Notes under the pieces: model-generated | The model's input: the letters and a program-made list of their open reading frames with translations, nothing else | Told to the model about the DNA's origin: nothing | The model's database searches: none | Origin: Trichosphaerium sp. ATCC 40318 | Taxonomy: Eukaryota; Protista; Tubulinea | Direction of reading: 5' to 3' | Assembly (NCBI GenBank): GCA_038496445.1 | Contig: JALMLS010000192.1 | Coordinates: 1 to 55,095 of the forward strand | Length of the DNA stretch: 55,095 bases | Part shown: positions 3,265 to 52,950 of the stretch, in pieces | Layout of the letters: each line of letters opens with the position of its first letter | How positions within the stretch are numbered: position 1 is the stretch's first letter | Program-made: the position numbers and the translations under genes

Positions 3265-4309
3265 TTAAAAAAGTATGGAGCACAGTGATATCAATAAACA
3301 GACTGCACTTAATGAAGGAAGGGTTGTGCTAACTTCTGAATTCGATGTTGGGGTCACTGTTGGTTCCATAGTTGGACTTGCAGTTGTAGGTGCGTTTGGT
3401 GAAATAGTTGTGTTTGTTGGTGCTTCAGTTGGCTCCATAGGGCTGGAAGTTGTTGGAGTGGCTGTTGTTGGAGTGGTTGTTGTTGGAGGTGATGTTGTTG
3501 GCGGCAAAGTGGGGGGTAAGGCTGAGGTCGGTTCAAAAGCACCAGTATAGAACAGTGCATTGGCTAAACATAATTCATAATGCTCAGAGGAACCATCATC
3601 AGAGAACAGGCGGACTTTATCAATAATAGTTGGTAACCCTATTTGTTCAATGTACGATGCTTTTACGGTTGAGTTACCCACTTGGCCGTATGTACAGTTT
3701 CTTGTTGAAGGATCATAACTGTAGATGAGATTAGCATTAGAAGTTTTATTGATAGAGGATGCTGAAAAGATTATGCGTACGAGAAATATATTGATACAAA
3801 CCCTCCCGGCATCGTATTTGTCTCACCGTGATTGTCGTCTTCATAAAACAAAAGCTCCTTGTTATAAAAATAAAAGCCATCATCAGTTGTGGGATTCCAT
3901 CCAAGTATCCTTCCATAGTCATCGTTCATCATGTTGAGATACACGCTAAATACAACGGTGTATGGAGCACGAATTATCAAAGGGTCTGGGTTGTTTAATA
4001 TCAACTCAGGGTTTACACCGCTTGGCAATTCAATACATCCTGAAGAGTAGTTTTGTGGTATGCCAATGGTTAAATTACTATGATTGTTACTTTAAGAAAA
4101 AAAGATATCACGTGAAAACATAAAAACACAATTTTGCATTTCTAGCGATATCAGAATGACGATATGTGTTTTCGAGCGTACCCAGAGCCAACACTGTCAT
4201 CTAGGTCATCATCAAAGTTAAATTCATGTACTAGCTTTTGCGACTGCGAGACTTGTACGAACGAAATCAATAGCCAGCATACAGATATTACGGAAGTTAA
4301 GAGTTGCAT
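3265..4309 (-). CDS. Secreted surface protein copy A: signal peptide, LamG/ConA-like beta domain, Thr/Pro stalk, C-terminal GPI-type signal (3 exons)
   Basis: Starts MQLLTSVISVCWLLISFVQVSQS, followed by HEFNFDDDLDDSVG. Two GT-AG introns join the ORFs. PTT-rich stalk and hydrophobic C-terminus LSAVCLLISLCSILF*. The fold assignment is inference. Confidence 0.75.
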
Positions 4310-7477: not shown

Positions 7478-8704
7478 ATGAAGCAACAAACGCAACTCTT
7501 AACTTCCGTAATATCTGTATGCTGGCTATTGATTTCGTTCGTACAAGTCTCGCAGTCGCAAAAGCTAGTACATGAATTTAACTTTGACAACAACCTAAAC
7601 GACAATGTTGGTTCTGGGTACGCTTAATCAACACAACTCTTTGTTCCCAAACTCAAATAAAAGAAAAAGCAAAATCGTGTTTTTTGGTATCACGTGACTA
7701 TCTTTTGTTCTAAGTAACATTCGTAGTACTTTAACCATTGGCATACCACAAATCTACTCTCCACAAGGATGTATTGAATTGCCAAGTGATACAAACCCTG
7801 AGTTGATATTAAACAACCCAGACCCTTTGATAATTCGTGCTCCATACACCGTTGTATTTAGCGTGTACCTCCCTATGTCGCAAGGGCGTACCTATGGAAG
7901 GATACTTGGATGGAATCCCACAACTGATGATGGCTTTTATTTTCGTAACAATGCGCTTACGTTTTATGAGGCAGGCAGTCGCGGTGTGACAAATACGATA
8001 CCGGGAGGGTTTGTATCAATATATTTCTCGTACGCATAATCTTTTCAGCCTCCTCTATCAATAAAACTTCTAATGCTAATCTCATCTACAGTTATGATCC
8101 TTCAACAAGAAACTGTACATACGGCCAAGTGGGTAACTCAACCGTAAAAGCATCGTACATTGAACAAATAGGGTTACCAACTATTATTGATAAAGTCCGC
8201 CTGTTCTCTGATGATTCCTCTGAGCATTATGAATTATGTTTAGCCAATGCACTGTTCTATACTGGTGCTTTTGAACCGACCTCAGCCTTACTCCCCACTT
8301 TGCCTCCAACAACATTACCACCAACAGCTATACCAACAACTTCCAGCCCTACATTAGAGCCAACTGAAGCACCAACAACCACTTCTAGTCCAACAACGTC
8401 GTCTCCAACCCCAATAAACACAACTGTTTCACCAAGCGCACCTACAACTGCAAGTCCAACCATGGAACCAACAGTGACCCCAACAAATACAACTGTTTCC
8501 CCAAGCACTATTTCTAGTCCAACAACGCCCTCTCCAACCCCAACAAACACAACTGTTTCACCAAGCGCACCTACAACTGCAAGTCCAACCATGGAACCAA
8601 CAGTGACCCCAACATCGAATTCAGAAGTTAGACTTGCATACACAACCCTTTCTTCATTAAGTGCAGTCTGTTTATTGATATCATTGTACTCCATACTTTT
8701 CTAA
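7478..8704 (+). CDS. Secreted surface protein copy B (inverted paralog of 3265-4309) with a longer Thr/Pro stalk
   Basis: Same 3-exon structure as copy A with long identical stretches. The stalk contains an internal duplication (NTTVSPSAPTTASPTMEPTVTPT x2). Hydrophobic C-terminus. Confidence 0.78.
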
Positions 8705-17060: not shown

Positions 17061-17525
17061 CTAGAGCATCACTGAAACAAAGACAACAATTGCAAACAAT
17101 ATCAATACCAATACGAGTTGGTTCCAGTTGATACAACAGTTAAAACCCATGTTGGTGAATGTAGAACTAATACAGAACGAATCTGTTGGTAGTGTTGAAT
17201 TGTAAGTGTTGTTTGATGAAAGCTTTGTTGATGAATACTGTACGTCATTCAATGGAGTATTCATTTCATGAGCGGATGTGGTGTTAATTGATGGTGATAG
17301 AGTGGTTCTGTTTGAGTTCACCGCATCAGTTGAAGATGCACTGTTTCTGTGTATTCTTCTCGCATGTTTTGTTGTTTGACGTGTATGGCGCGTAGGTCTA
17401 TCGACAATTGTAATACTACCTGATCTTCGAAATCTTGTATAGCGATCACGTATTGAAGATACTGATGCAATAATAGATATCATTGAGAAGAAGAGGGCTA
17501 CAACTATCACTTGTTTCGAAACCAT
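17061..17525 (-). CDS. Small secreted/membrane-anchored protein (signal peptide, Arg-rich, Ser/Thr/Asn-rich, C-terminal hydrophobic helix), copy 1
   Basis: Intronless 154-aa ORF with hydrophobic N- and C-termini and several NxS/T sequons. A close paralog lies at 18584-19048. Confidence 0.75.
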   Translation of the reverse strand: MVSKQVIVVALFFSMISIIASVSSIRDRYTRFRRSGSITIVDRPTRHTRQTTKHARRIHRNSASSTDAVNSNRTTLSPSINTTSAHEMNTPLNDVQYSSTKLSSNNTYNSTLPTDSFCISSTFTNMGFNCCINWNQLVLVLILFAIVVFVSVML

Positions 17526-18583: not shown

Positions 18584-19048
18584 CTAGAGCATCACTGAAA
18601 CAAAGACAACAATTGCAAATAATATAAATACCAATACGACTTGGTTCCAGTTGATACAACAGTTAAAACCCATGTTGGTGAATGTAGAACTAATACAGAG
18701 CGAATCTGTTGGTAATGTTGAATTGTAAGTGTTGTTTGATGAAATCTTTGTTGATGAATACTGTACGTCATTCAATGGAGTATTCATTTCATGAGCGGAT
18801 GTGGTGTTAGTTGATGGTGATAGAGTGGTTCTGTTTGATTTCTCCGCATCAGTTGAAGATGTATTGTTTCTGTTTATTCTTCTCAGATGTTTTGTTGTTT
18901 GGCGTGTATGGCGTGTAGGTCTATCGACAATTGTAATACGACCTGATCTTCGAATTCTTGTATAGTGATCACGTACTGAAGATACTGATGCAATAATAGA
19001 TATCATTGAGAAGAAGAGGGCTACAGCTATCACGTATTTCGAAACCAT
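18584..19048 (-). CDS. Small secreted/membrane-anchored protein, tandem copy 2
   Basis: The ATG at 19048 gives 154 aa collinear with copy 1. The copies share a 3' flank and an upstream ~62-bp block (18031-18092 vs 19918-19983). Confidence 0.75.
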   Translation of the reverse strand: MVSKYVIAVALFFSMISIIASVSSVRDHYTRIRRSGRITIVDRPTRHTRQTTKHLRRINRNNTSSTDAEKSNRTTLSPSTNTTSAHEMNTPLNDVQYSSTKISSNNTYNSTLPTDSLCISSTFTNMGFNCCINWNQVVLVFILFAIVVFVSVML

Positions 19049-20840
19049 AAGAACAATAACGAGCTTCAAATGCTGGAGAATTTGTATTTTATTTGTTGCT
19101 CACTTAACAACATTCACGCGCCAACACTTATAAGACGAAAGTGGTATTGAATCCCAAAAAAATCTGATTTATAAAACACTCCTTACACCTACATCCTTGA
19201 GTGTTGAAAAAAAACATTGCCAAATGTTCACATCAGTTTCCTCCGAGGAGTCAATAATAAAGATTGTAACTAACGATATGAACTTACAACCGTGCATAAA
19301 CCTCATACATGACCATGTATACATGGACCCGCGCCAATGTGTAAAGCTTGATGTCTCCACGAAAGTGTTCGTAGACAAAAGATTTGTGAGCCCAAAATCA
19401 TATCAACAAAATGATTACCTGTGACTGCCATACCCACCAATGGATGTTAGTGAGAAAGGTCGGGTTCTTGCCCCGAACGAAGTGATAGGACAGACAGAAA
19501 GCGAACAACGCTCTTTATTAGCTAGCCTCCTCTGTCCTACGTCAAAATGCTATCAACAAAAAACTGGGAAGACAAAGAATCATGTGCTTTTTTTTTCCCA
19601 ACACTTTTTTCCCAAAACAACGATTGTATCAAAACTCGGCTGTGTTTGTATTCTTGTAGTATGTTCACAAAAAGGCACGTGATGAAAAGTAACTAGACGC
19701 GCATGTCTGCTTTTTTTTAGTGCGAATAAGTAGCAGCCTTGGTACCTAGTGCGTAGGTCTCTCCTGACCAAGACTAGAACATTGTTTGGTGGACACATTC
19801 TCAGCATTGTGGTCATCATGAAACACAAACATGTTCTGAGTACCTCAGGCCATGTAGTCTAGTCTACTGAAACTTTAACACCTTTCAAACATAGTTCACA
19901 TACCAAGAACTTCAGCAATGCGACTTCAGGTAACTTATATGCACTCTAGTACCCTTGAAACTCATATAAAGCTATACAAAAACATGACTCACAGGGGAGA
20001 ATAAACTTAAAGGTACGTAACACCACAACTTAATTCTATTAAATTAAAGAGGATAATAGCTGTGATTACGTTCTGTAGACTCCAAAGAAACTGTCGTATT
20101 GGAAAGGCTCTTACAGAGCAACTTACGCACAATAAAAGATATGAGCAAAAACGACAAAATGGGTGAGGCAATCTAGCTGGAATTAGAACTTTTTTTCCCC
20201 TACGAATAGTATCACGTGACACATTTTTCGTTTAAATTACGTGAGGGTAGTGCACACTAATTAGTTGGTGACAGGGTACGTGATAAATCTATGAAGGCAA
20301 CAATGAAGGTACTAAAATAATCGAATTTCATGCGCTCAAATATAGCGATACATCATTTTTTTTCAGTTGTTAACATTAGCATAAAGCGATACTCTGCTTA
20401 TTTTGATGTTTATCCATTACTTTATTGTCACTGTGAGGGAAATATCGGTATTGATCTTAAACACGTTAAGAAGCAATACCATTAAGTCAAAGCGTAGATA
20501 ATCTGGAAAAACAAATTGTTAATTTATTCAATACTGTTTAAAAAATAAGAAACGCTTGCGACTAGCGCAGCTTTATTAAGATATTATCTACACCAATGGA
20601 TAGGCTTTAAGAGCACATGTATTCTACAGATCTTGACGAGTGGCAAGGCCATGTCTGAAAACAAACATCATATTCATTGAACATACAACTCCAATATTGT
20701 TAATTTAATTTCACCTGTTCGTGTAACATAATTGAAGTGAAGATGATCAATTACCATTTTAAGGTTAGATGAAGCTTGTTTTTTACCAACTAGGCAAAAT
20801 GATAAGCAGTCATTTATAAAAAAACAAATTATAGCTTTGC

Positions 20841-34044: not shown

Positions 34045-37000
34045 TTACTTTGCTGTACTTTCAAGGAGAGCTATTTTTGCCAGTAGAATGGCATTCTTCT
34101 CCTTTAGGCTAGTGTTGTCTCGCATTAGATCTTGGACACCTTCGGAGAGGTTGGCGCTTTCCTTGAGGTTTTTGACGCTTTCCTTGAGGTTTTTGACACT
34201 TTCCTTGAGGTTGATATTGTCTAGCTTTAGGGTGTTGTTGCTTCCTGTGAGGTCTTTGATGCTTTCAGTCAATTCAGTAATATGCTGTTCTTTATTTGCA
34301 TTCATTTTCTGTGAATTCCGTTGATGTTCAGCCAGGCTCTTCTTCAGTTTCTCTACCTCGTTGTTTGATTCTTGTAATTCTAGTATGAGATTGGCATAAT
34401 TATAAATTGGTTGTTCATCATCAGTTGAATCATCATGGGCAGCCCACAGTTTTCTAGTACAAAACTTAAGTTTAAAAGATACTATAAAATTATACCTGTT
34501 AGAAATAAAAGTGTCAGAATCAGATAGTTCATCATCAGATAGCTCGCCAGCTGAACCATCAGTATCTACTTCTGAAGCTTGATCTTCAGTTTGTTCATTA
34601 TCGCCTTTCTCTTTCTTCGTCTTTTTATTACCTTTCTTGGTTTTTGAAGTTTTACGTTTTTTTGTACGTTTGTTTGTAACTTTGATGATGTACCGAGCAA
34701 CAGCTTGAGTATCTAAATAATGTTGATAATTTAATCATATTTTTCAATTGTATTGCTAAGTGTACCTTGTGCCACTACCAGCTCATCGTATACTGCATCT
34801 TCAAGTTTATCTGCAGGCAAAAGTTTACCGATGCGGTCTACCAATGCATAGTGACTTTGGTAGCCTGGTTTTATTGGTCTTCCGTGCAAGTTTTCATTCA
34901 TGGTTTTGGTACCCTCATCAGTATTTTTACATACAAGGGGATCATGCTTTTTATCATCAAGTAAGTAAAGAATATCCACATCAATATTATTGTTTGCTTA
35001 CCGGATAAACATTCCCAGGAGTAACAAGACTTAAAACCAGTGTTTTTGCAGTTGTTCCTTTTAAATCATATGAAGCGGCATACTTTATGCTTCTCTATTG
35101 CCGAAAATGAATATTGACCACCTGCAATAATTGGGTAATAACGTACAGTGAAGTATATCCCTTGACCATAGTAACCAGCGTCTAAAGAACTCACAGTTCC
35201 AAAACCAGCCTTTACAATACTCTTAGCTGCTTCTTCGGTAGTTCCATGTACCATCAATATCACTGGTAGCTAAATAAAATATTTGTAGTGCAAGAGTACC
35301 AAGAACATTACCTTATCTTTTTTTTCAGTATAACAATCATTAAAAGCAGTGAGGGCGTTGTACTTTTGGTACACAGTCTCTTTGTATTCCTTGTAGATAC
35401 TATCAGTTTTCCAATTTTGTTTTTTAAACAACTTGGGCAGTTCTCTAATAGATGCATGTTTAGAATCACGAAAATGCCTATGAAGTGTGGAGCAACCGTA
35501 CTGATGTCTGTGTGTCAGTATTTCGTTGATTCGACCAAAGTTTTCTGTCAAGATGTCATTATAAACGAGAGTCGCTTCAGTGATATCGTAATTGTCATAG
35601 CCATGTAGTTTTGACATCTCCTGTTTGAGGATGTTGAATTCTCTGACTGCCACTTTGTCGTTTGTATCAAGAAGGTTCAGTGTTTTGTAGTGTGTTGCCT
35701 TTGCAACAATGCCTCTTTTTGTAATATTAGAACTAATAAAAAGTAATTGAACACACGTGTTAGAGCTATCCCAATTATTTGCAAAATACAATCGCGGATT
35801 CAGGCTCCATGCGTTTTCACCTTTTAATCCTTTTGAAAACTTTTTTTAGTATTATAACCACACGCTTCTTACCTTCAGTACACTCTTCTTTTAAGGATTC
35901 ATCTTGACTGTTATTAACCCAAGCATCATTGGGCATATCATGCAGAAAACCTTGCATTGATTGCCCATCTTGTTTCCAGAATTCCTGTAGAAAAAGAATG
36001 TTGTTTGTAGTGTAGACGTTAGCAGTGAAGATATCGTACCGGAGACAGTACAACTTTGGGATCACATGTAGAACAAATTAAATAACAAATCCCTTTTTCC
36101 ATTGCCAGTTTGAAATAATACCACGTTGGCTAAACGTTGTAATGGTTAGTTTAAGGTATTGGTATTCAACAAAGTGTACCAAACGGTGAAGCCATTCTTC
36201 AAACTGTTTTCTCCCCTCTACGTTGACATTTTGCGAATAGTGCTTTTTACAGTATCTCCACAGTGGATGGCATTGTTTACCACTTGGACAGTATTTTAAG
36301 AAAGTTACGAATTTTTCAACAGCTGAGGGTGTATTTGATACCACTTCTCTAATTAAAATGAACATAAACTCTTGCCACTTTCTTTGGCATGGAGTTACTA
36401 CTACTTACAGTGTTAGCTATTAATTTCACCAAATTTTGTAATGTGACCAATACCTGAATCCTTGTTGGTTTCACTTTCATCAATAGTTTCAATATTATTT
36501 GCGTTAGGTTTGATTAATTTCAACATTAACATTGATATATAGTCAAAGTCTCAAATGATAGTAAATAAACATAGTTTTTATCTCATTTGTGATATTACCT
36601 ATATAAATTAAAGCTGTATTTCCATCTTTATCAACAACTTCAATATTGGCGTTGGCTTTAAGTAAGATTGATACAACTTCATTGCGTCCTTTTTGTGCTA
36701 AATAGTAAAATGAGATATGTACATGTTGTATCTCATCATATCATGTTACCTGCACATATTAAAGCTGTCTTTCCATCTTCATCAACAGCATCAATATTGG
36801 CATTGGCGTTGAGTAAGATTGACACAACTTCATTGTGTCCTTGGTATGCTAAATAGTAGAGTGAGATATGTACATGTTGTATCTCATCATATCATGTTAC
36901 CTGCACACATTAAAGTTGTCATTCCATATTTAGCAACAGCATCAATATTGGCATTGGCTTTGAGTAAGATTGATACAACTTCATTGTGTCCTTGGTATGC

Positions 37001-37740
37001 TAAATAGTAGAGTGAGATATGTACATGTTGTATCTCATCATATCATGTTACCTGCATATATTAAAGCTGTATACCCATCTCCATCAACAGCATCAACATT
37101 GGCGTTGGCTTTGAGTAACATTGATACAACTTCATTGTATCCTTTTAGTGCTAAATAGTAGAGTGAGATATGTACATGTTGTATCTCATCATATCATGTT
37201 ACCTGCACATATTAAAGCTGTCTTTCCATATTTATCAACAGCATCAATATTGGCATTGGCGTTGAGTAAGATTGATACAACTTCATTGTGTCCTTGGTAT
37301 GCTAAATAGTAGAGTGAGATATGTACATGTTGTATCTCATCATATCATGTTACCTGCATATATTAAAGCTGTCTTTCCATATTTAGCAACAGCATCAACA
37401 TTGGCGTTGGCTTTGAGTAACATTGATACAACTTTATCGTGTCCTCTTTGTGCTAAATAGTAGAGTGAGATATGTACATGTTGTATCTCATCATATCATG
37501 TTACCTGCATATATTAAAGCTGTCTTTCCATATTTATCAACAGCATCAACATTGGCGTTGGCTTTGAGTAATGTTGATACAACTTCATTGTAGCCATTTG
37601 TTGCTAAACTTTGTCAACTATTTGCTTAGCAAGCATTACAAACCTGCAAAAGAAAACACAATTTCAATTATGGGGAGATGGATGTTGGTTGGTTCTTCCT
37701 TTTCTAAACGTTGGTATTTGTCACTCGATGATTCTGTCAT
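34045..37740 (-). CDS. Ankyrin-repeat / PARP-like ADP-ribosyltransferase / basic NLS-like and acidic tract / coiled-coil protein
   Basis: ATG at 37740 (exon 37644-37740), then seven 99-nt ankyrin exons. Further in-frame exons lead to MVHGTTEEAAKSIVKAGF...AGYYGQGIYFT, KYAASY, GYQSHY and YDELVV (PARP H-Y-E-type motifs), then KRTKKRKTSKTKKGNKK, an acidic tract and heptads (NLKESVK repeats), ending at TAA 34045. Confidence 0.85.
36599..37603 (-). repeat. 151-bp tandem array: 7 ankyrin exons (99 nt) and 6 introns (52 nt)
   Basis: Exons at 36599-36697, 36750-36848, 36901-36999, 37052-37150, 37203-37301, 37354-37452 and 37505-37603. Introns read GTAACATG...CTATTTAG and are all phase 1. Confidence 0.95.
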
Positions 37741-38128
37741 GACGTGTTGTCACTCTTGAGGTTATCACAAAGTAGTATTAAGTTGGTGTCTCTTGACACA
37801 TGAGATTTTTCAGTGAAGTGTTATTGTAATTTGTGTTACGGTTCTGGTTTTGTGGTTTTTTTTTATTAACTGATTCGCTACAATAGTTTTTTCAAACCAC
37901 TTGGAGACCTTCAATCTGTTTATTTAAGTAAATGGAGTTACAAACTGGTGACAAAACAGGCCATGTACCTTCACGAAACACAGGTTTTTCAAATATTTCA
38001 CCAAAATAGTGCGAATACCCTCGCTCAACTTTGTTTTTTTTTTTTTCAAACAAGAGGCGAGCGCCGTAGCCCTCACTTTATTCATAATAATAATTACAAG
38101 ATAATTACATCGAAAAAAATCACCGTCC

Positions 38129-38548
38129 CAGCTTGCCCGATCAGGCTCCGAAATTTGTTCTCACAAATTTTGGAGGGCCACGTGCCAGCGTCGTACCATA
38201 ATACAACCTAATTAAACCAATAAAAGTAAAAAGGTAAGAAAAGAAATGGAAAAAATAAAAATAAAAAGTGCCAACAAAAGTCAAATTAAAATCAGCTTGC
38301 CCGATCAGGCTCCGAAATTTGTTCTCACAAATTTTGGAGGGCCACGTGCCAGCGTAGTACAATAAATGATTGAATAATAAGAAAATAAAAGGAATATAGT
38401 GCTATTAAAAGAACAAATAAATTTTTGTAAAATTAAAGCATAAAATAAAAAGAAAAGAGAAAAGAACCAATAACTAGACTCATCCCAGCTTGCCCAATCA
38501 GGCTCCGAAATTTGTTCTCACAAATTTTGGAGGGCCACGTGCCAGCGT
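38129..38548 (-). repeat. Three copies of a 63-nt hairpin-forming motif in the retrotransposon 3' UTR
   Basis: Copies at 38129-38191, 38293-38355 and 38486-38548 differ by one substitution in total and are separated by unrelated U-rich (on the RNA) spacers. Confidence 0.95.
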
Positions 38549-38560
38549 CATGTATATTAA

Positions 38561-41500
38561 TTAATTGTAATCGTCTTCCCATTCAATAAATCCAATTCGT
38601 TTAACTTGTTTTGATTTACGCTTTTTGAGTGAAGGAGCCAAATGCTTGGATAGAATAACGGTACCATCTCTGTTAAAACCATCTATACCATGACCAATAG
38701 CAAATGCAGGAGTATTGCGCTGTCTACGCTTAAAGAGCCACTCCTCTGAACCCACAGTACCATAATCCAAGGAAACTTGAGAACCATCCAATCTTCTAAC
38801 TATAGATACAGCAGTGACATTATCAAACCACGATGGTTTATCAAAAGATTCACGATCTATGGTCAAAGAAAGCCACTTGTAAAATCTAAGGCGTAACGTT
38901 TGAGCAGACATCCACTTGTACTTCGGGACATTATGTTTCACATCATTCCTTATAATCCACGTAAAAGCCATAATAGCACCTAAACAAAACAAAGTAGCAG
39001 GTTTTTTACATTTGATTAAATTTTGCTCTGTCAAAGCAGGTACGTTAAATTCTTCTATGAGATCTGACAGTACATCTCTAATACTAGCAACAACTTCCCA
39101 ACCGTAGAATAGCTCCTCATGTTTTTCTGGAGGCATAGCGTCTTTGACATGAGTCACAGGCATCACCCTCATTATCACTCTCCATATAACATCTCTGACA
39201 TAATTCGCTGATTTAAGTTCTAACAATGCAGGCAAACAGGTACACTGATCTTTGATAGCAAACCACGAACGCTTCCAACGTGGAACTGATTGAATGAGCT
39301 TGATTTTCATCACGTGTTTAAGCTTTCTAGGTTTAGCTTTGAGACTAACGTTTAAGGAACACCACACATCTCTGCACTTTTTACCTAAATCTGTACCAGC
39401 AAACCATACTTCCGAATAAAGAGTACCTTTGATCAAGTGCCTTTCCCACAATGTCGCTTTAAACCCAGTAGCTATCTGCGCTATAGAAAAAAGTTGTAAA
39501 CCACCATTTTTGTAGCACTGATTCATGTGAGTCCAAGGGACACGTGATTTATGAATGCTGTGATTGTAAACGTATGAACTTTCCCAAAGAAACCAATTAA
39601 TAATTGAATGATACCTAGGAACAAGGTGAACAGGAAAATCAAGTGCTCTAGCACAATAAATCAACTTAGCTTGAGCGTAGCTCCTTATAACGCTAATCTT
39701 TTGACGTATTGTAGAGCACATGGGTTTCCATTTCATCAAACAAGCTTCAATTTTCTCAATCGCTGATTCCCAATCATAACCCAATCCATCATCATCCAAC
39801 CGAAGACCCAAGTACTTAATCCATGTGCCATTGTCAAACATTTTGTTTTCGTCTTTGTTACCTACAATATTCGCTTGAAAACACTTTGAACTGTTAACAG
39901 AAAGACCAGTAGCAAGCTTATATTTGTCTAAATACTTGTTAAGATAAACAATATCGTTTTTAGAGCTGGCATTCAGAATGAGATCGTCAGCAAAGAATAA
40001 ATTCTTTACACAGACATTGCCAGGAAGTGTAACACCAGCAATTTTTGATACTTTGTTGATGAAAGAGTTGAGAGGTTCTACTATTAGAGCAAACAAATAA
40101 GGGCTGATAGGATTGCCTTGACCTGTACCACGTTTTGTTGTAAAAGAGCCTTCACTGATGCTGTTGTTAATACGCACTTTAACATCAAGGCGCAGAGCAT
40201 GTACAATTGCCTCAGCAAACTCAGACTTGTACCCAATAAATTTTAATATACGGATCAATGCCAAATGACTACAAGAGTCAAAAGCCTTTCTGAAATCATA
40301 CGCAATAAGACTCAGCCACTTTAATTCTTTTTTACAAAAACTAATAACTTCTAGAGTTGTTATGAGATTGTCAACAATATCTCGCCCTGGTATGAATCCA
40401 TTTTGCGATTCCAAAATGTATTTTTGCATGAATGGAGTCATACGGTTGTAAAATACTTTCATAAATATTTTATAGTCAACGTTTGCTAAAGTAATTGGAC
40501 GGTAGTTACTCAAATCAGAAGCGTCTCCTTTTTTAAAGATAGGTACAATGATTCCCTTACACAGACGCTCATCAACCTCACCATTTTCAAGGAACAGATT
40601 GAATAGGTTAGCCAATATAGGAGCAAAAGTACCGCTCAATGATTTGTACAAGCACGCTGTTAAACCATCAGGCCCAGGAGCCTTGTTAATTGGGAGTTTC
40701 GCTATAACCTTAGTAACTTCCTTGACAGTAATTTTTTTGTTAAGCTTATCCACAAACTTGTTATCACACGGAATGTCCCATTTGTTAATAAACGATTCAA
40801 GTACCTTTTCTTCAATCTCCACCTCATCGTATAATTTACTGTAAAAGTTAACACCTGCGACAAGCATTTTACGAATATCAGAAGAACAATCACCATTGCC
40901 AGTTTGTAGTTCCTTAATGTTTAATCCCGCTTTCTTGCCTTTAAGCATTTTTGTAAGAAAAGCACTTGGAACTTCCTCAAACATAGCTTTTGTTGATGCC
41001 GCTAGATTATTAAGATGTTGGTTTTTTTCCTCACAAAGAAATTGATATGTTAAGAACTCCTCTTGTGTAATATCAGTACCACTTGCTAGTTGAGAAGCAA
41101 TAAGTTCACGAGCTGTAATTTTGTTTTTTAATTCATCCTTTTGCGCTTCCTTTAAGATGTTGATCATCGCCTGTTTAGCAAAAAAGTAGTCGTCAACAGA
41201 GCAACCAAAATTCATCTCACAGATTATATTTTTGTTGTAAGAATTCCAGAAAACTTGATTTAGTTTAAAACTCCGCTCACTGCGTTTTGGAAAATTAAGT
41301 TCTAACAACATTAATTTATGATCTAAGTGAAAAAACCCAGTTGGAACAAGTTTAAAACTCTTCACGTGATTTTTAACATAGTCAGAAACAAAAATCATGT
41401 CTATTCTACCACCACGGTCATGGGTAGGATGAGACTTTTCAGTAAAAACAGCAACGTCAGAAAATCCTAATAAACAAATGTTTTCATAAATTTCTTTGTC

Positions 41501-41902
41501 CAAACTGTTTTTGTCAATACGTAAATTAACATCACCTGCTATTATGTCGCATTGTGCCAAATCATCATAGACAGAATCCCAAAAAACACATTTGTTTTTG
41601 CAAGGTGCGTAAACAACACCTATTCTAAGAGAAACACCTGATGCTTGAACATCAACAATTAATAAACGACCTTTTTGTTCATTCACAAGTTTCGATTGAG
41701 CTCCACGGAGTGTAGCAAGAGCGACCCCAGTACCTCTACCAGCATCTGTGTGTAAAATACGTTTACTGTTAATATGAGAAGGGAATGAATTGGTTTCAGT
41801 AGCACAAAAGTAATTACACTTTAAATTAAATGAAAATTGTTTTAGGCGAAAGAAATTTGAAAAACCTCTACTATTTACTACCGCTAGTTTGACTCTAGGC
41901 AT
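38561..41902 (-). CDS. Retrotransposon ORF2: AP endonuclease and reverse transcriptase (1113 aa from ATG 41902)
   Basis: Endonuclease motifs VNSRG, ATET, VYAP, GDVN, RIDMIF and DHK. RT motifs KAPGPDG, NYRPITL, QNGFIPGR, DFRKAFD, QGNPISPYLF, FADD and KYLG. Confidence 0.95.
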   Translation of the reverse strand: MPRVKLAVVNSRGFSNFFRLKQFSFNLKCNYFCATETNSFPSHINSKRILHTDAGRGTGVALATLRGAQSKLVNEQKGRLLIVDVQASGVSLRIGVVYAPCKNKCVFWDSVYDDLAQCDIIAGDVNLRIDKNSLDKEIYENICLLGFSDVAVFTEKSHPTHDRGGRIDMIFVSDYVKNHVKSFKLVPTGFFHLDHKLMLLELNFPKRSERSFKLNQVFWNSYNKNIICEMNFGCSVDDYFFAKQAMINILKEAQKDELKNKITARELIASQLASGTDITQEEFLTYQFLCEEKNQHLNNLAASTKAMFEEVPSAFLTKMLKGKKAGLNIKELQTGNGDCSSDIRKMLVAGVNFYSKLYDEVEIEEKVLESFINKWDIPCDNKFVDKLNKKITVKEVTKVIAKLPINKAPGPDGLTACLYKSLSGTFAPILANLFNLFLENGEVDERLCKGIIVPIFKKGDASDLSNYRPITLANVDYKIFMKVFYNRMTPFMQKYILESQNGFIPGRDIVDNLITTLEVISFCKKELKWLSLIAYDFRKAFDSCSHLALIRILKFIGYKSEFAEAIVHALRLDVKVRINNSISEGSFTTKRGTGQGNPISPYLFALIVEPLNSFINKVSKIAGVTLPGNVCVKNLFFADDLILNASSKNDIVYLNKYLDKYKLATGLSVNSSKCFQANIVGNKDENKMFDNGTWIKYLGLRLDDDGLGYDWESAIEKIEACLMKWKPMCSTIRQKISVIRSYAQAKLIYCARALDFPVHLVPRYHSIINWFLWESSYVYNHSIHKSRVPWTHMNQCYKNGGLQLFSIAQIATGFKATLWERHLIKGTLYSEVWFAGTDLGKKCRDVWCSLNVSLKAKPRKLKHVMKIKLIQSVPRWKRSWFAIKDQCTCLPALLELKSANYVRDVIWRVIMRVMPVTHVKDAMPPEKHEELFYGWEVVASIRDVLSDLIEEFNVPALTEQNLIKCKKPATLFCLGAIMAFTWIIRNDVKHNVPKYKWMSAQTLRLRFYKWLSLTIDRESFDKPSWFDNVTAVSIVRRLDGSQVSLDYGTVGSEEWLFKRRQRNTPAFAIGHGIDGFNRDGTVILSKHLAPSLKKRKSKQVKRIGFIEWEDDYN

Positions 41903-42800
41903 TAGATGTTTTAGTCCTTGGATTATAAGAGTTACCTCTTGGTGTTGAGGTTTTTGCTTTCTTTCCTCTCGTATTATCATCTTTAGAAGTATCACGTGCT
42001 CTTTTGGCATTATCACGATATGAGGCAGCCTCCGAAGGAGAGAGCTTTGAAATATTTTGAGAATACCTTTGCACTTTTTCAAAATCACTTTCGGAGTTAA
42101 AAACCTTCATAACCAAAAATCCAGATCCACGTTTGTATACCTGATATTGTTCCAATCCAGTGAGTTTTTTTGAACATACGAAAACACAACCGTTAGTGGG
42201 TAAATCACTAAATTTTGTACGCCATCTACGGAACATCAACATCCGTCCTCCAAATCCTAAACATATTCTATCACAAATAGTGCACATAGTCTCTTCGTCA
42301 TCAAGAATGTCAAAACCTGATATAACAATCTTTATAGAGCCGTGAGCATAAATGTAAAATTTATATCCTTTGTCTCGAAAAATATCAATTTGTTTAGAAA
42401 ATTGTGTACGTAAATTCTCCTTATTTTTTACGACCATTATAATTCTATTTGGATATTCTTTTGCAGTGATTATTTTAGAACTACCTTTGAAAGCATTAAC
42501 TAGGTTCACACGGTGGTCGTTGAATTCTTTTAGTTCGCCATCGGAAGAGTCTTCGTTGATTCCAAAATTTATAATCCAATAAAGCTCGTCGTTCATTTTA
42601 TCAGCATTGTACCTCATAATCCGCTCTTCGGAGACTTTTTTGATACAATTCAAGATAATGTTGTTGTCGATTTTTCGTTCTTCTACAGGAAGCGTACTTG
42701 TAAGGTTTCGGACATCTTCAGCATCTTCCATATCAAAATCAGTAACACTTGAGTAAGAGGCTTCAGCCCCGCTGGTTATGGCAGTATCTTTCGGTTCCAT
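41895..42800 (-). CDS. Retrotransposon ORF1 (putative RRM-type nucleic-acid chaperone, no zinc knuckle)
   Basis: 301-aa ORF directly upstream of ORF2 and inside the TSD. RRM-like segment KIVISGF...LGFGGRML...TNG and a basic C-terminus. Confidence 0.85.
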   Translation of the reverse strand: MEPKDTAITSGAEASYSSVTDFDMEDAEDVRNLTSTLPVEERKIDNNIILNCIKKVSEERIMRYNADKMNDELYWIINFGINEDSSDGELKEFNDHRVNLVNAFKGSSKIITAKEYPNRIIMVVKNKENLRTQFSKQIDIFRDKGYKFYIYAHGSIKIVISGFDILDDEETMCTICDRICLGFGGRMLMFRRWRTKFSDLPTNGCVFVCSKKLTGLEQYQVYKRGSGFLVMKVFNSESDFEKVQRYSQNISKLSPSEAASYRDNAKRARDTSKDDNTRGKKAKTSTPRGNSYNPRTKTSNA

Positions 42801-43479: not shown

Positions 43480-46400
43480 GCTAATGTAGTTGTAGGAAAC
43501 TTGAAACCCCACACATGTTGGAATAATCACAGCTGTCCCTGGGATGCTGTTTTCACTGGTTTACAGTCTGTTAGTGATATTTGCGTATGTGTTGTTCTAT
43601 ACACAAGTACTAAGAAAGTTTAGGTGATTCCCAACAACCCGACAGTACTCACATCTAACAACATAGATGGAAGTAGAAACACATTTATTCAGTTGTTTTT
43701 ACAGCATTGCTACACAAAATATCCAAAGAGGAGGAAGGAAATAGAACATAACTATGAGGAGCATCGCTGTGGAAAATATAGCCCTGATTTTAGTGTCTGT
43801 GAAATTCACAGCTATGTTAGAAGTGTTTGTGTTTCATTTCATGCATTTGCTAACTATAACAGCGGTTGCAAATGTGAAGGTGAGCATAATAAACTATTGC
43901 CATCCATGCTTCTGACACATCCAGATTACAGAGTGTCGCATCAGTTGTGTATTTTTGGAGCAAGATATTGAAGCAAAAATATTCAACTGGCTCATTAAAC
44001 ATCTTTCAGTTTCAAACAACTGTCTGACTTGCAGTGAGGGAGGGTTTAAGGCTGTTGAGGTATGTAACTTTATATTATTTTGAAAACAACCTAATTTGAT
44101 AAAGAGTGTGACATTACTGGCTTTGATTACAGTGTATCCAAATCCCAATGTTGTTCAGGACATGGCCAAACTACCTTGGACTTTAAACTCCATGGAAGGT
44201 ATGTAAAGACAGTTAGCGTTTGCACTAACATAAGCAGAACTTGGGAGGCAGCGTACATTTTGATGTGGCAGCCTAAACCGCATCCACATTTCACTGCATA
44301 TGTGAATAACAATGGAACTTGGTGGTTTATTGATTGTATGACATGGAATCTAATCCTTGTACGCTATATGAAAGGAAATGCCTCTAGGGCCCATAATAAT
44401 ATGTGGGAAATACAGGTGGTTGTTTACAGAGGATCACAACACACTGTATCATGTAAAGAACTGTACAAATTGCGCCCAGAGAGGCAAGTAATACAAATTG
44501 ACCTGATAAGTGAAAGTGACAGTTTCAGGTATGTAAATGTTGTTCCATTGCTTTACTAACATCAAACAGTGACTATATCTTCAGTGACGCTGATAGTGAC
44601 GCTGATAGTGACGGGAGTATTCAATCAGATGTGTCTGGCAATAGTGTTGAGTTGGCATTTACTTCAATCAAATGGAATTGCCACGGAATATAGAATCTTT
44701 TGGGCCAAATGCAGGTGTTCAAATTGTTCAAATATTGAACAAACAAACAGCGACAGAAGCAGAAAGAAACAAAAATGGCAATCACAAGTGGCTTCTTGAA
44801 GCAACAGTAAACACAAAAAAGGGTTCTTGTAGGTGTTTTGTGTGGGAATGCTGTAGGTAAGTAATCTATTTTTTAAACCTCACATCTTGTTTTTCTGACC
44901 AACAATAGGTTTTAACAAAAAGTTATCTTGTACTTGTTAAAAAGACACCGCTCATTGGCAAACAAATTTCCAATATCTGAAACACCTATAACTACAACTA
45001 TAAAAGGGCCAACTAAACTTCCAAGGCTTGTTGTACAACGTACACTGTTAAAACTGAGGCACCAAGTACAAAGGCCAACAAAAGAAGGTTCAAGACAGAA
45101 GGATTACTGTTGATGATACGTTGTCTTAACTTCTGTCACAGAAACACCTTCTACAAGCTCATCAACCACTGCTTCACAGCCAACTGTTGCACCAACAACG
45201 GATGCTCCAACTATTGCTGCACACAACAACAGATGCACCTAACTGGTACTTGCTTGATATTTTTTAGCTTTCTTTCTAACTGTGATAGATGCGCCAACTA
45301 CACCTACAACTGCAGCCCCTACCACAGCCACACCAACAACTGATGCTCCTACTGCAAGTACTCCAACAATAGAACCGCTAACAACAGCTTCAACTACAGA
45401 TGCTCCTATCACCAAAACCCAGCTCCAACCACCAATGTACCTACGACTGAAGCTCCAACAACAAAAGCACCAACACAAAGGCCCCTATAACTGATGCTCC
45501 TACCACTGTGGCACCTACTACAGACGCACCAACGACTGAGACAATAAACTATAGATGCTCCAACCACTGATGCACTGACAGCAGAGGCTACAGCGAAAGC
45601 GCCAACTACTGGCACTCCAACAACCAAGGGGCCAACAAAAGCTGCACCAACCACAGTAACACCTACTACAGATGCACCAACCACCGAAGCCCCAACAACT
45701 GAGGCTCCTACAACTGGTACTCGATCGATATAATTTTTACCTTTCTCCTAACAGTGATAGATGCACCAACTACAGTAGCACCAACTACAGATGCACCTAC
45801 AACTGCTGCACCTACAACAGAGCTCCAACAACTGAAGCACCAACAACAGATGTGCCAACAACAGAAGCACCAACTACTGAGGCTCCAACAACTGAAGCGC
45901 CAACGACAGAAGCACCAACAACTGAGGCTCCTACTACAGAGGCACCTACTACGGAACCTCCAACTACCGCGGCACCAACAACACAGCATCCAACTACAAT
46001 GCAACCAATGACATCTCCACCAACTACAGAAGCGCCAACTACAGTGGCGCCTACCACAGAGACACCAACAACTGAGGCTCCAACTGATGCTCCAACTACA
46101 GAAGCACCTACAACTGTAGCGCCAACAACGGAGGCTCCAACCACAGAGGTTCCTACAACTGCTGCGCCAACAACAGAAGTGCCAAATCCAACTACAATGC
46201 CACCAATGACGCCTCCACCAACTACAGAAGCACCTACAACTGAAACTCCAACTACTGAGGCACCAACAACTGGTACTTGATTTATATATATTGTTGTCTT
46301 TTTCCATCTAACAGTAGTAGATGCACCAACTACACAAGCACCAAGCACAGAAGCGCTAACAACTGCAACCCCTACCACTGATGCGCCAACAACGGAGGCT

Positions 46401-48467
46401 CCTACAACTGCAGCGCCTACTACTGAGGCTCCAACAACTGAGGCTCCTACAACTGTAGCACCTACTACTGACGCTCCAACTACAGAAGCACCAACTACTG
46501 ATGCACCTACCACTGAAGCTCCTACAACTGTAGCGCCTGCTACTGAAGCCCCTACTACGGAGGCTCCAACTACAGGAGCCTACAACCGAAGCTCCTACCA
46601 CAGAGGCTCCTACAACTGAGGCGCCAACAACTGAAGCCCCAAAGACTGAAGCTCCAACTACTGCTGCTCCTACCACGGATGCACCTACAACCGAAGCTCC
46701 AACGACAGAAGCACCAACTACAGAGGTTCCAACAGCATTGGCGCCAACTACTGAGGCGCCAACAACATTGGCGCCAACGACAGAGGCACCAACAACTGAA
46801 GCACCTACAACTGTAGCGCCTACCACTGAAGCTCCTACAACTGTAGCACCTACTACATTGGCGCCTACTACGGAGGTTCCCATGACTGAGGCGCCAACTA
46901 CAGTAGTCGTACGACTGAAGCTCAACCACAGATGCACCTACAACTGAGGCACCAACAACTGAGGCTCCAAGCACTGTAGCGCCTACTACAGATGCACCAA
47001 CAACTGATGCACCAATGACATGCTCCAACAACTGAAGCCCCAACAACTGAAGCTCCAACAACAGAAGCACCAACGACTGAGGCTCCAACTGCAGAAGCAC
47101 CTACAACTGTAGCACCAACAAGTGGTACTTTGTATTTTATTCTAAAGCAACTAACTTTCTTTGTAGATGCTCCTACAACTGAAGCGCCTACGACACAACC
47201 ACCAACAACGGAGACACCAACTACAGAAGCCAACTGAAGCACCAACAACTGAAGCTCCAACAACTGAAGCGCCAACCACTGAAGCTCCAACTACAAACGC
47301 TCCAACAACGGAGGCTCCAACTACAGAAGCGCCAACCACTGAGGCACCAACAACTGAGGCACCAACAACTGTAGCACCTACTACAGCAGCTCCAACAACA
47401 GAAGCCCCAACAACTGTTGCGCCAACAACCGAAGCAACTACTGAAGCCCCTACTACAGAATCGCCTACAACTGATGCACCAACAACAGAGTCACCAACTA
47501 CAGCTACTCCTACAACAGCAGCACCAACAACTGAAGCTCCTACCACTGCAACCCCCTACAACTGTAGCTCCTACAACTGACGCTCCAACTACAGAGGCTC
47601 CTACAACTAACGCTCCAACTATGGAAGCACCAACAACTAACGCTCCAACTACTGATGCTCCTACAACTGAAACACCTACTACTGACGCTCCAAATACTGA
47701 AGCACCAACTACAGAGGCTCCTACAACTGTAGCACCAACAACTGAAGTGCCAACAACTGAAGCTCCAACCACAGATGCACCTACTACTGAAGCACCAACA
47801 ACCGTAGCACCAACTACAGATGCTCCAACCACCGAATCGCCAACTACTGAGGCTCCAACAACTGAACCACCTACAACAGATGTGCCTACGACTGAAGCTC
47901 CAACTACTGAAGCACCTACAACTGTAGCACCAACAAGTGGTACTTTATATTTTACTTTCTAAAGCAACTAACTTTCTTTGTAGATGCACCAACTACAGAA
48001 TCGCCTACAAGCACCAACAACAGAGGCTCCAACCACAGAGGTTCCTACAACTGAAGCTCCTACAAGTGAGCACCAACTATAGTAGCTCTTACAACGGAAG
48101 CCTCAACTACAATGGTACTTGAGTGATTAATTGGACATTACTATCATCTTTTTCAACTTAACAGTATTAGAACCAGCAACCGAAGCTCCAACAACAGATG
48201 TGCCAACCACAGTAGCACCAATTACAGATGCTCCTACAACTGAAGCTCCTACTAAATCTCCAACTACAAAGGCTCAATAAATGGTACTTCCTACTTTACT
48301 TTCTAGAACTAACTTTATTTACGGAGGCAACTACAATAGTACCTTCAAGTGCTTCATCAACTGCTGAGGTACCTTGTACAGATGCATCTACAACTGATAC
48401 TTGGCTTCAAATAAATAAACTACACCAAAGACGCCTACTGCATCCAAAGAAGCTCCAAGGCTTTTGA
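43480..48467 (+). CDS. Large mucin-like protein with (TTEAP)n repeats and a Cys/Trp-containing N-terminal region; many frameshifts, boundaries uncertain
   Basis: About 3 kb of ACN-ACN-GAR-GCN-CCN repeats interrupted by phase-1 GTACT...TAG introns (45246-45288, 45717-45760, 46273-46320, 47125-47166, 47940-47983, 48115-48170). The upstream exons are only partly resolvable. Confidence 0.6.
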
Positions 48468-51329: not shown

Positions 51330-52950
51330 TTGAAGGTCCTGTGCTCTGTTTCCAGCTTTATCAACAGCGTCAATATCGGCATTGGCTTTGACTAAAATTG
51401 ATCGATTTTATTGAATCCCATTAGTGCTAAATAGTAACATGAATAACATGTATTTTACCTTGTTGTGTGATATTGCCTGTCCAAATCAAATCTGTCTTTC
51501 CACATACATTCACAGCCTCAATGTTGGCATTGACATGGATTAACATGGTACGATTTCAATTAGGTTGTCACCTTCTAGTACTGAAAAAAAATAATAGTGT
51601 GAGCTCTCAGGTTGTATTTAATGTATGATACTACCGGCATTAAGCAAAGCTGTGTTTCCATGTGCATCAACATTTAGTTTAGCGTTGATACAACTTTGTC
51701 AAATCCGAAAAATGCTAGTTTATTGATCTAATACAATCAAAGACCATCAAATTGATGACTCAATATGTATGATCTGGTGATATTACTTGCATTAACCAAA
51801 GCTGTGTTTCCACTTTGATTTATCAACAGCATCAATATTGGCATTGGCATTAATTAGCATTGATACACCTTCATTGTGTCCTTTTAGTGCTAAATAGTAG
51901 AATGAGATATGTACATGTTGTATCTCATCATATCATGTTACCTGCACAAATTAAACCTGTATTTCAATGTTTATCAACTGATCGATTAGAATTGATACAA
52001 TTTTGTCCATATCGTGCTAAATAATAGTGAGCGACTTGTATTGCTCTCATCATACGGAATACCTGCACGTATCAAACCTGTATCACCAGCTACATTAAAA
52101 GCATCAATGTTGGATAGCTAGCTTTTTTGTGAAGATATCCAACTAAGCAGTTGTGACCTTATTGTTCTATTGGTACAAATGAAGACTAATTTTTATCTTA
52201 CCTTACTAATACTATTTGTAGCCACAGTTTGATTCAAGTCTGGTTAACAGTATAATCGCACTATTTCAAAGACGTGCGTTTCTTACCTAAGGTTTAGTTA
52301 CTTAATTGGGCGTTAGGTGATGAAGTTACTAGAGTTAAACTAGTTAAAGTTGTTAACTATCTGGCCCAAGGTGTACCATGTACAGTGGTGTACGTATTAG
52401 CTTAACATCTACAAAGGTGCTTACTGAATTGTACTTTTAGCATGTTTGTAAAAAGTGGTATCATTCGTGTGCTTTGTGTGATATGTTATTGACTGATGCA
52501 TTTTAGTATAACGAACCAATTTATAAGTTTGCCTTTATTCGTGACGTCCTCACAGCCTTGGAGAGTATTTTGAACGTGGGTGATAGTATACCTGTACTTT
52601 CTTTTTTCTGATTCTATAGTTAATACTGTTTTACATAGAATCAACTGCTATGTATTTCAGTTTGATGCTGATTGCATCCTTAAAATCAAGTACGTTTATT
52701 CTCATGTATGAATATACAAGCGATGTCTATGCGTGGTCTATCTCCGATCTGGCTTTGATTACCATTAACACAATATCGTTGTCTATTGCTCCTGTTTGTG
52801 CAGAGAGTAATGTGTGTAACAAGTTATATATATCTCATCTGTGACCTGCACAAACCAAAGCTGTACTTCCATATTTAGTACTGGCGTCAATATTGGCCTT
52901 GGCATTGATTAACACTGATACTATTTGGCTCTATTCTTCCCCTTGCTAAA
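51330..52950 (-). pseudogene. Degenerate ankyrin exon/intron cassette array (about 7 units) related to 36599-37603
   Basis: Units such as ALKGHNEGVSMLINANANIDAVDK carry indels. The intron at 51890-51941 matches the 52-nt array intron at 51 of 52 positions. Confidence 0.85.
52114..52709 (+). pseudogene. Inverted, intron-containing copy of an internal fragment (~13561-14226) of the EF-hand/ARM/PB1 gene, inserted into an ankyrin pseudo-exon
   Basis: For example, GTAGCCACAGTTTGATTCAAGTCTGGTTAACAGTATAATCGCAC is the reverse complement of ~14061-14104. The copy has several internal deletions. Confidence 0.9.

Follow-up and report, generated by a model that had tools for sequence, protein, structure and literature searches.

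Uniform introns and variable binding-surface codons in the ankyrin exon array of an ankyrin-PARP gene from Trichosphaerium sp. ATCC 40318

Why are the introns in a tandem array of ankyrin exons more alike than the exons that they separate? This question is raised by a gene on the minus strand of contig JALMLS010000192.1 of Trichosphaerium sp. ATCC 40318 (assembly GCA_038496445.1), in which an array of ankyrin repeats is joined to a PARP-type catalytic domain. The whole stretch of DNA that was analysed, positions 1-55,095 of the forward strand, is called the window below. An earlier interpretation, made from the letters without database searches (the sequence-only reading), had proposed that the introns act as recombination handles or make the exons interchangeable in splicing. 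In our view the array is probably a minisatellite of exon plus intron that evolves in concert and is diversified by selection at its binding surface, in a gene of a lineage-restricted ankyrin-PARP family.

With Tandem Repeats Finder a period of 151 nucleotides (nt) was detected at 36607-37591, with 6.5 copies and 91% matches. On the minus strand the repeat unit consists of a 99-nt exon and a 52-nt GT...AG intron. Seven phase-1 exons of this length, each with one ankyrin repeat, were confirmed at the positions described before (Table 1). The repeat translations given at that time, from TNGY..DKYGKTALIYA through QKGR..DKDGNTALIYI, were reproduced exactly. A single exon already passes the Pfam Ank threshold (E=9.6e-5, 22.9 bits, cut-off 21.1; PF00023 and PF12796 were tested). 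All seven cassette exons are entered in phase 1, between G and CA of an Ala codon, and are thus symmetric. Since they also share the length of 99 nt, gain or loss of a cassette always stays in frame. A pattern search recovered the five identical introns and the sixth one with its 2-nt difference, as claimed in the sequence-only reading; by chance no match to the 52-nt intron is expected (0 in 100 shuffles).

The exons differ from each other at 3-19 of 99 nt, and 33 of the 99 sites are variable across all seven. The mean nucleotide identity among the cassettes is 86%. Exons 3, 5 and 6 are closest, with mutual differences of only 3-8 nt, and cassette 7 is the most divergent (15-17 differences). 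Two types of framework were identified. At codons 11, 16 and 19, exons 1, 2 and 4 carry Met or Thr, AAC and Val, respectively, and exons 3, 5 and 6 carry Ile, AAT and Ile. The framework of exon 7 is a mix of both.

The cassette statistics refer to the seven cassettes of this one array, and the tests of exons against introns compare the first six exons with the five identical introns. Variable sites were found at 27 of 99 exon positions and at 0 of 52 intron positions (p=3e-6). After removal of the seven most variable codons, 13 of the 78 framework sites remained variable, compared with the same 0/52 (p=0.0016). Even the purely synonymous variable sites (4 of about 22.5) exceed the introns significantly (p=0.006). 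Expressed as diversity, this is 12.5% for the whole exons, 7.4% for the framework and about 10% for synonymous sites, whereas the introns show 0 in 260 bases. The most variable codons are located within a few bases of the uniform introns. Hence, the statement that introns more conserved than exons are the reverse of the neutral expectation was correct, and the introns surpass even synonymous sites in uniformity.

The variable codons are not distributed evenly. Over all codons of the cassettes the ratio of non-synonymous to synonymous differences (pN/pS) is 1.3. At the six positions randomised in libraries of designed ankyrin repeat proteins (DARPins) it is 2.7-3.5, compared with about 0.85 at the other 27 codons; the register of these surface positions was checked by alignment to ankyrin-1/2. 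Four of the six codons with at least three different residues fall into the six library positions (hypergeometric p=0.005). The clustering of variability at the DxxGxT turn and at the end of the AAxxG helix, observed already from the letters, was thereby borne out, and these are the canonical ankyrin contact positions. A dN/dS of at most 1 at the variable sites had been named as a sign of simple recent amplification. In terms of pN/pS the surface codons lie above this value, although the estimate comes from only seven cassettes. In the related transcript contig L001 (2604 nt) the most variable ankyrin positions are the same as in the array described here.

A further observation concerns the residues following the conserved Asp. 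In L001 (1-784) they alternate between KY and xD (DKYG as against DDDG, DSDG and DNDG), and a like alternation is seen in the Trichosphaerium array (DKYG as against DGDG, DEDG and DKDG). It is either a dimorphism shared across species or a convergence.

Exchange between cassettes is suggested by the distribution of the variants. In the four-gamete test 22 of 55 biallelic informative site pairs were incompatible, and at least two exchange or homoplasy events are required within the 99-nt exon. The patchwork noticed in the sequence-only reading is present: repeat 5 combines the YQGH..SILL start of repeat 3 with the K and AKYG of repeat 2. Identical tracts centred on introns have lengths of 59-111 nt; inside exons, identical runs average 26 nt and do not exceed 48 nt. 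Since the intron-centred tracts are the longest perfect homology, crossovers are most likely in or next to introns. The proposal of introns as recombination handles gains from these tracts and from the fact that gain, loss or skipping of a cassette stays in frame. It loses from the mosaic breakpoints inside exons, so that the exchange is not simply one of whole cassettes. To that extent the handles are a real property of the locus; that the identity is kept for this purpose is a separate claim.

The intron itself was also examined. It holds the palindrome ATGTACAT between GAGAT/ATCTC flanks, but its predicted folding into a hairpin was no better than that of shuffled sequence (z=0.13), and no Rfam match was obtained. 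For the 29-nt intron core no match was found in metagenome contigs, and the antisense open reading frame (ORF) carrying the intron translation, which could tag other cassettes, had no homologue.

In contigs of public RNA runs, joints were found at the predicted borders; their ends are CT..AC, which on the gene strand read GT..AG. Thus, the 52-nt sequences are removed as introns. Most of the downstream introns are covered by such joints, too. Two of the joints span several units, namely 36697>37203 with 505 nt (3x151+52) and 36697>37505 with 807 nt (5x151+52). In run X2, a 139-nt contig contains the ANK1 exon (0 mismatches in 101 nt) joined at exact splice borders to 35 nt placed at the start of ANK7. 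Five cassettes may have been skipped here, but the contig could equally be derived from a shorter allele or a paralogue. In another X2 contig the end of an ANK1-type exon (37505) continues out of frame into letters at 34427-34456 that correspond to the beginning of the last exon (…KLWAAHDD…), and the rest of the gene is skipped. Its origin could be a truncated paralogue, template switching or aberrant splicing. Most of the RNA contigs on the array are only 90-99% alike and therefore come from paralogues, so that the odd joints need not be isoforms of the gene described here. They are hints of exon skipping, of shorter alleles or paralogues, or of template switching.

The reading frame is open through all 20 joined exons. 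The ankyrin arm is followed by a Cys/His-rich middle region, the PARP-type catalytic domain, a Lys-rich and acidic linker and a coiled coil. No Pfam family matched the Cys/His-rich middle, and the label of a UBR box for this region was not recovered by Pfam in the gene pieces or in the homologues. The catalytic domain is recognized by PF00644 with exon 16 alone (41 residues, E=5e-4). In the homologous transcript proteins P0002 and P0001 the same family scores 30.9 and 36.5 bits (gathering cut-off 26.7). A profile of the family matched PARP12 (E=3e-8), PARP10, ZAP, PARP4 and PARP15 in the PDB; with P0002 alone no PDB sequence match was obtained. The motifs HGT and GQGIYF align through their His and Tyr with HGTS and GKGSYF, which hold the catalytic His and Tyr of PARP12. 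The Glu of YDELVV, the candidate third residue of the NAD-binding triad H-Y-E (or H-Y-I/L), is placed only by its adjacency to the aligned LVV / FVIF strand. An AlphaFold2 model of P0002 from a two-row alignment was too poor to check this Glu (overall predicted local distance difference test score, pLDDT, 39.7), but in it residues 483-587 form a long helix whose pLDDT reaches 90. Exons 19-20 gave weak Pfam matches only, of coiled-coil type. SAM, WWE, macro and CCCH domains were not detected by Pfam in the gene pieces or the homologues, and neither NACHT nor NB-ARC matched in any of them. The protein is probably cytosolic, because no signal peptide is evident. The best explanation of these data is that the gene is intact and expressed and that the ankyrin array is its target-binding arm.

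Two side observations belong to the C-terminal half of the gene. The introns at 35445-35501 (57 nt) and 34454-34495 (42 nt), both on the minus strand, are multiples of three without stop codons, and their retention would keep the frame; P0001 and P0002 are without both of the corresponding segments. At 34151-34212 (minus strand) a 21-nt unit is repeated three times with 95% matches and encodes KESVKNL repeats within the coiled coil; the gene thus contains a small coding tandem repeat in addition to the ankyrin array.

Table 1. Features of the ankyrin-PARP gene and of the second array in the window
Feature	Position	Strand	Remarks
Gene model, 20 exons, 917 codons, 19 GT-AG introns of 40-57 nt	34045..37740	-	
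Exon 1, start codon (37740-37738) and partial N-terminal capping repeat (…LPIIEIVFSFA)	37644..37740	-	
40-nt intron after exon 1	37604-37643	-	joint 37603>37644 in two RNA runs
Array, seven 99-nt phase-1 ankyrin exons alternating with six 52-nt introns	36599..37603	-	
Ankyrin exons 1-4	37603-37505, 37452-37354, 37301-37203, 37150-37052	-	one ankyrin repeat each
Ankyrin exons 5-7	36999-36901, 36848-36750, 36697-36599	-	one ankyrin repeat each
Five identical 52-nt introns	37453-37504, 37302-37353, 37151-37202, 37000-37051, 36849-36900	-	span 36849..37504, 0 mismatches
Sixth 52-nt intron	36698..36749	-	2 changes against the other five, at intron positions 40 and 42
49-nt intron after cassette 7	36550-36598	-	diverged homologue of the 52-nt intron (intron alignment)
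Exon 9, degenerate eighth capping repeat (FDYISMLMLKLIKPNANNIETIDES…)	36454-36549	-	
Exons 10-13, Cys/His-rich middle (…CPSGKQCHPLWRYCKKH…CYLICSTCD…)	35757..36403	-	conserved in P0002; RNA-contig joints
Exons 14-18, PARP-type ADP-ribosyltransferase domain, motifs HGT, GQGIYF, YDELVV	34766..35714	-	PF00644
Exons 19-20, Lys-rich and acidic linker, then coiled coil; stop codon 34045-34047	34045..34712	-	
In-frame 42-nt intron between exons 19 and 20	34454-34495	-	
Decayed ankyrin cassette array, about 7 units	51343..52921	-	70-93% identical to the unit of the intact array
Seventh copy of the 52-nt intron, 51/52 identical	51890..51941	-	within the decayed array

A second array of ankyrin cassettes was identified 14 kb away from the first. 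It is decayed, with a stop codon at a conserved Gly, a 4-nt insertion and deletions, and a PARP part was searched for behind it but not found. One of its introns is the seventh copy of the 52-nt intron, and the exon remnants flanking this copy are only about 83-90% identical and broken. It had been stated that confinement of the intron to one locus would speak for simple tandem amplification; as far as the 55-kb window is concerned, the intron occurs at both arrays, and only between ankyrin cassettes. The remaining introns of the decayed array are diverged homologues of the 52-nt intron. They are as diverged as the exons of that array, and thus the intron sequence is under no strong constraint of its own. 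Furthermore, diverged homologues are present both there and after cassette 7, so that an intron at this position of the repeat is ancestral. That the intron seems to decay when left alone argues against strong constraint and also against recent intron insertion. The copy with 51/52 identical bases is best read as a recent conversion from an active array.

When 134 residues from the N-terminal part of the PARP domain were compared with 1.84 billion representative proteins, only two clusters (50% identity) were found, both derived from transcript contigs of the Joint Genome Institute (JGI). Five distant PARP proteins, of which one has ankyrin repeats, were all that a word-indexed search contributed in addition. 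In metagenome contigs no relative of the PARP part was confirmed, and two ORFs from the locus, looked up as exact sequences among public assemblies, gave no match. According to these searches the ankyrin-PARP family is lineage-restricted. The gene model aligns at 58-61% identity with P0002 and P0001, and this range applies to the PARP region. L001, one of the JGI contigs, encodes seven ankyrin repeats in spliced form together with the middle region, the PARP domain and the coiled coil; therefore, the architecture is conserved in a relative of 58-61% identity. The ankyrin array of L001 matches Ank_2 (E=4e-38), its register agrees with that of ankyrin-1/2 in the alignment, and its best PDB matches include DARPin chains. 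The nucleotide identity is 86% within the Trichosphaerium array, compared with about 61-63% within the array of L001 and between both arrays. Therefore, homogenisation or amplification took place after the split of the lineages.

How can these results be combined? The 151-nt minisatellite, with one exon and one intron as its unit, would encode the binding arm. The units may trade sequence through unequal crossovers and gene conversion of short tracts, inside the array and probably also with paralogous arrays. Such exchange would keep the introns and the framework of the repeat uniform, while diversifying selection would keep or renew the differences at the binding-surface codons. Under this explanation the identity of the introns would mainly be a product of homogenisation, and the introns, as the longest tracts of perfect homology, would be the likeliest crossover points. 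The mosaic sites, the intron shared with the second locus and the odd joints of the RNA contigs bear on cassette exchange between loci. The pattern along the array is that of the edge effect typical of concerted evolution: uniform units in the interior, a divergent cassette 7, two changes in the last 52-nt intron, and a more divergent cap and following intron. Concerning the protein, the variable ankyrin surface would pick the target and the PARP domain would ADP-ribosylate it. With this function, which is proposed by analogy with tankyrase and antiviral PARPs, the gene is a candidate for a sensor-enzyme of conflict or immune type.

Several points weigh against this explanation. Only seven cassettes were analysed, and the overall pN/pS is modest. 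Not only the surface codons but also framework and synonymous sites vary more than the introns. So sharp a boundary between exon and intron is not predicted by plain homogenisation with selection, and an extra assumption is needed. Candidates are conversion tracts initiated in the intron, exon variants imported from paralogues with the same intron, or a function of the intron.

Four rival explanations were considered. The identical introns could be actively kept uniform, by intron-centred breaks or by selection, as universal joints or interchangeable splice units of a dedicated diversification system. Cassettes would then be swapped, gained or skipped at a high rate, in the germ line among ankyrin-PARP paralogues, somatically or by splicing, and would yield a repertoire of binding arms. 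Introns cleaner than synonymous sites, their position as longest homology tracts, the symmetric phase-1 exons, the ANK1-to-ANK7-like joint at exact splice borders in run X2 and the same intron in the second array would all fit. We consider such a system unlikely, however: the gene is a complete 917-codon ORF and has no silent cassettes beside it, the one other array in its neighbourhood has decayed, mosaic breakpoints are found within exons and not only at introns, and the odd joints are found among RNA contigs that mostly represent paralogues. We give somewhat less weight still to an ordinary recent tandem amplification, in which the exon differences would be due to chance or to source cassettes that already differed. 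In its favour, exons are often duplicated in tandem, the array is short, and exons 3, 5 and 6 look recently copied. Against it stand exons with considerable diversity, in the framework and at synonymous sites as well, beside introns with none, and the combination of old exons and new introns in one 151-nt unit needs recombination at both exon borders.

Equally improbable as recent amplification is, in our estimation, that the intron itself is the conserved or spreading entity, be it as a small RNA, a splicing element or a break hotspot, or by introner-like insertion or reverse splicing between GCAG and CA. Young introns between older exons would be accounted for directly, and the well-preserved copy between broken exon remnants in the decayed array agrees with this. 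Yet within the window the intron occurs only between ankyrin cassettes, the diverged homologues that occupy this position of the repeat, following cassette 7 and in the old array, mark it as ancestral and normally decaying, and the contrast between flanks and intron at the second locus is non-significant by a rough count. Introner insertion, which would place near-identical introns in unrelated genes, in many cases with terminal repeats and target-site duplications, was rejected on account of these homologues at the same site in older units and of the restriction of the window copies to ankyrin cassettes, and a structured intron RNA on account of the folding result and the missing Rfam match. 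Finally, a repeat collapsed in the assembly or polished to its consensus could make the introns falsely identical, since tandem repeats are prone to assembly errors. This is very improbable. The exons would have been homogenised as well, each intron base is located within about 50 nt of cassette-specific codons, so that reads can be placed, exon variants are independently present in RNA contigs (such as ANK1 in run X2), and the frame is intact across 20 exons. A minisatellite under concerted evolution, with selection at its surface codons, thus remains the explanation that we prefer.

The neighbourhood of the gene in the window was inspected as well. Directly upstream and on the same strand lies a retrotransposon of the long interspersed nuclear element (LINE) type (38031-42800, minus strand). 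Its ORF2 of 1175 amino acids (38561-42088) contains a reverse transcriptase (PF00078, E=3e-26) and overlaps with an ORF1-like frame of 301 amino acids (41895-42800). An A-run on the minus strand at about 38031-38046 reads as its poly(A) tail and lies about 290 nt from the start codon of the gene. In the 3' region two copies of a sequence of about 60 nt with an inverted repeat (…CTCCGAAATTTGTTCTCACAAATTTTGGAG…) are present at 38130-38192 and 38294-38356, which may be a duplicated stem-loop module of the 3' untranslated region. A diversity-generating retroelement, in which a template and a variable repeat differ at adenines and a dedicated reverse transcriptase acts, was considered as the source of the variable codons and rejected, because the consensus base at the variable sites is A in 19, C in 7, G in 4 and T in 3 cases, i.e. 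all four bases are affected. A link of such an element to the adjacent reverse transcriptase was also rejected, as the latter is an ordinary LINE-type ORF followed by the A-run.

Farther away, about 144 copies of a 15-nt repeat were detected at 45766-47936 (plus strand). They encode Pro/Thr-rich pentapeptides of the PTTEA type, and the local G+C content is up to 50% with strong skew; the product looks like a mucin-like surface or secreted protein. An inverted pair of small paralogous ORFs is located at 3265-3681 (minus strand) and 8129-8704 (plus strand), with MGNSTVKASYIEQ…, a Pro/Thr/Ser-rich stretch and a hydrophobic tail. A second pair, at 17061-17525 and 18584-19069 (both minus strand), encodes Ser/Thr-rich membrane-anchored proteins. 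Both pairs suggest local duplications of surface-protein genes.

If concerted evolution with selection at the binding surface is the correct explanation, the family would be a fast-diversifying group for intracellular recognition, i.e. a natural library of ankyrin binders coupled to an ADP-ribosyltransferase. It would represent a new architecture beside the NLRs of plants, animals and fungi, the ROCO proteins of brown algae and the variable lymphocyte receptors (VLRs) of lampreys. The exon-plus-intron minisatellite would also be a clean natural test case for how gene conversion and selection divide a 151-nt unit between them, and for whether short introns of identical sequence serve as crossover points that keep the gain and loss of repeats in frame. 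A practical use of the binding arms as natural ankyrin scaffolds is possible. If, on the other hand, the introns were universal joints after all, a unicellular marine eukaryote would combine cassettes into a repertoire of binding arms that is coupled to an effector with ADP-ribosylating activity. Repeat shuffling in fungal NLRs, or VLR assembly in lampreys, would then have a counterpart built from exon cassettes. Membership in the somatically assembled receptors of the lamprey type was rejected for this gene, as it is a complete 917-codon ORF and the only other cassettes in 55 kb are decayed.

Among known systems, tankyrase has the same combination of an ankyrin arm and a PARP catalytic domain, and its ankyrin clusters recruit substrates. 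The gene is not a tankyrase; no SAM match was found in it, the middle region and the coiled coil differ, and the likeness is one of architecture only. In sequence the family profile comes closest to PARP12, PARP10, ZAP, PARP4 and PARP15, and the gene was also compared with the group of PARP12, PARP10, ZAP, PARP14 and PARP15. Several members of this group are antiviral and fast-evolving in vertebrates. In contrast to this group and to tankyrase, the gene described here has a Cys/His-rich middle and a long C-terminal coiled coil, and none of the four accessory domains mentioned above was detected.

The zinc fingers of PRDM9 form a coding tandem repeat in which unequal exchange homogenises the units, and only the contact residues are hypervariable and positively selected. 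There the fingers lie in one exon, whereas in the ankyrin array every unit has an intron. The most variable positions of the array (two after AA, two after D, one after G) are among those randomised in DARPin libraries. DARPins are engineered and the array is natural, and in the array the conserved His and some framework residues vary, too.

In venom phospholipase A2 (PLA2) genes, accelerated evolution is classically recognised by introns that are better conserved than the coding exons (PMC7285919). In MHC genes recombination homogenises some segments, while selection keeps the binding segment diverse (PMC3434948). Unlike the present case, separate genes or alleles are compared in these two systems; here the contrast is found between adjacent units of one tandem array.

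In Podospora the ANK, TPR and WD repeats of NLR proteins show high internal conservation, polymorphism of repeat number and positive selection on the concave face, and fungal NLR repeats undergo concerted evolution as well as repeat shuffling within and between paralogues (PMC4986451). The array is comparable to them in its near-identical ankyrin repeats (86%, with at least 85% as the criterion), its few hypervariable positions on the binding face and the fusion of the arm to an effector. In contrast, the fungal repeats are encoded in continuous exons, and the repeats described here occur one per exon with an intron in the homogenised unit. The effector is a PARP-type domain without NACHT or NB-ARC, for which reason an identity as an NLR of fungal type was rejected for all gene pieces and homologues.

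The closest parallel in exon structure was already drawn in the sequence-only reading, and it is real: for LRR-ROCO and NB-ARC-TPR genes of Ectocarpus, one repeat per exon (72-nt leucine-rich repeat exons), a proposed exon shuffling and positive selection on ligand-contact residues are described, and the families include pseudogenes and inactivated exons (PMC3341825; PMC11378527). Common to both systems are the repeat per exon, the uniform intron phase, the excess of amino-acid change at contact residues (here with seven cassettes) and a gene family with pseudogenes or inactivated exons. The Trichosphaerium gene differs in its ankyrin repeat, its PARP effector and its tiny identical introns of 52 nt, which result in a true 151-nt tandem repeat. 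Introns more uniform than exons, as in this array, are unreported for Ectocarpus in the accessible part of PMC3341825. Particular to the locus is that the intron belongs to the homogenised unit.

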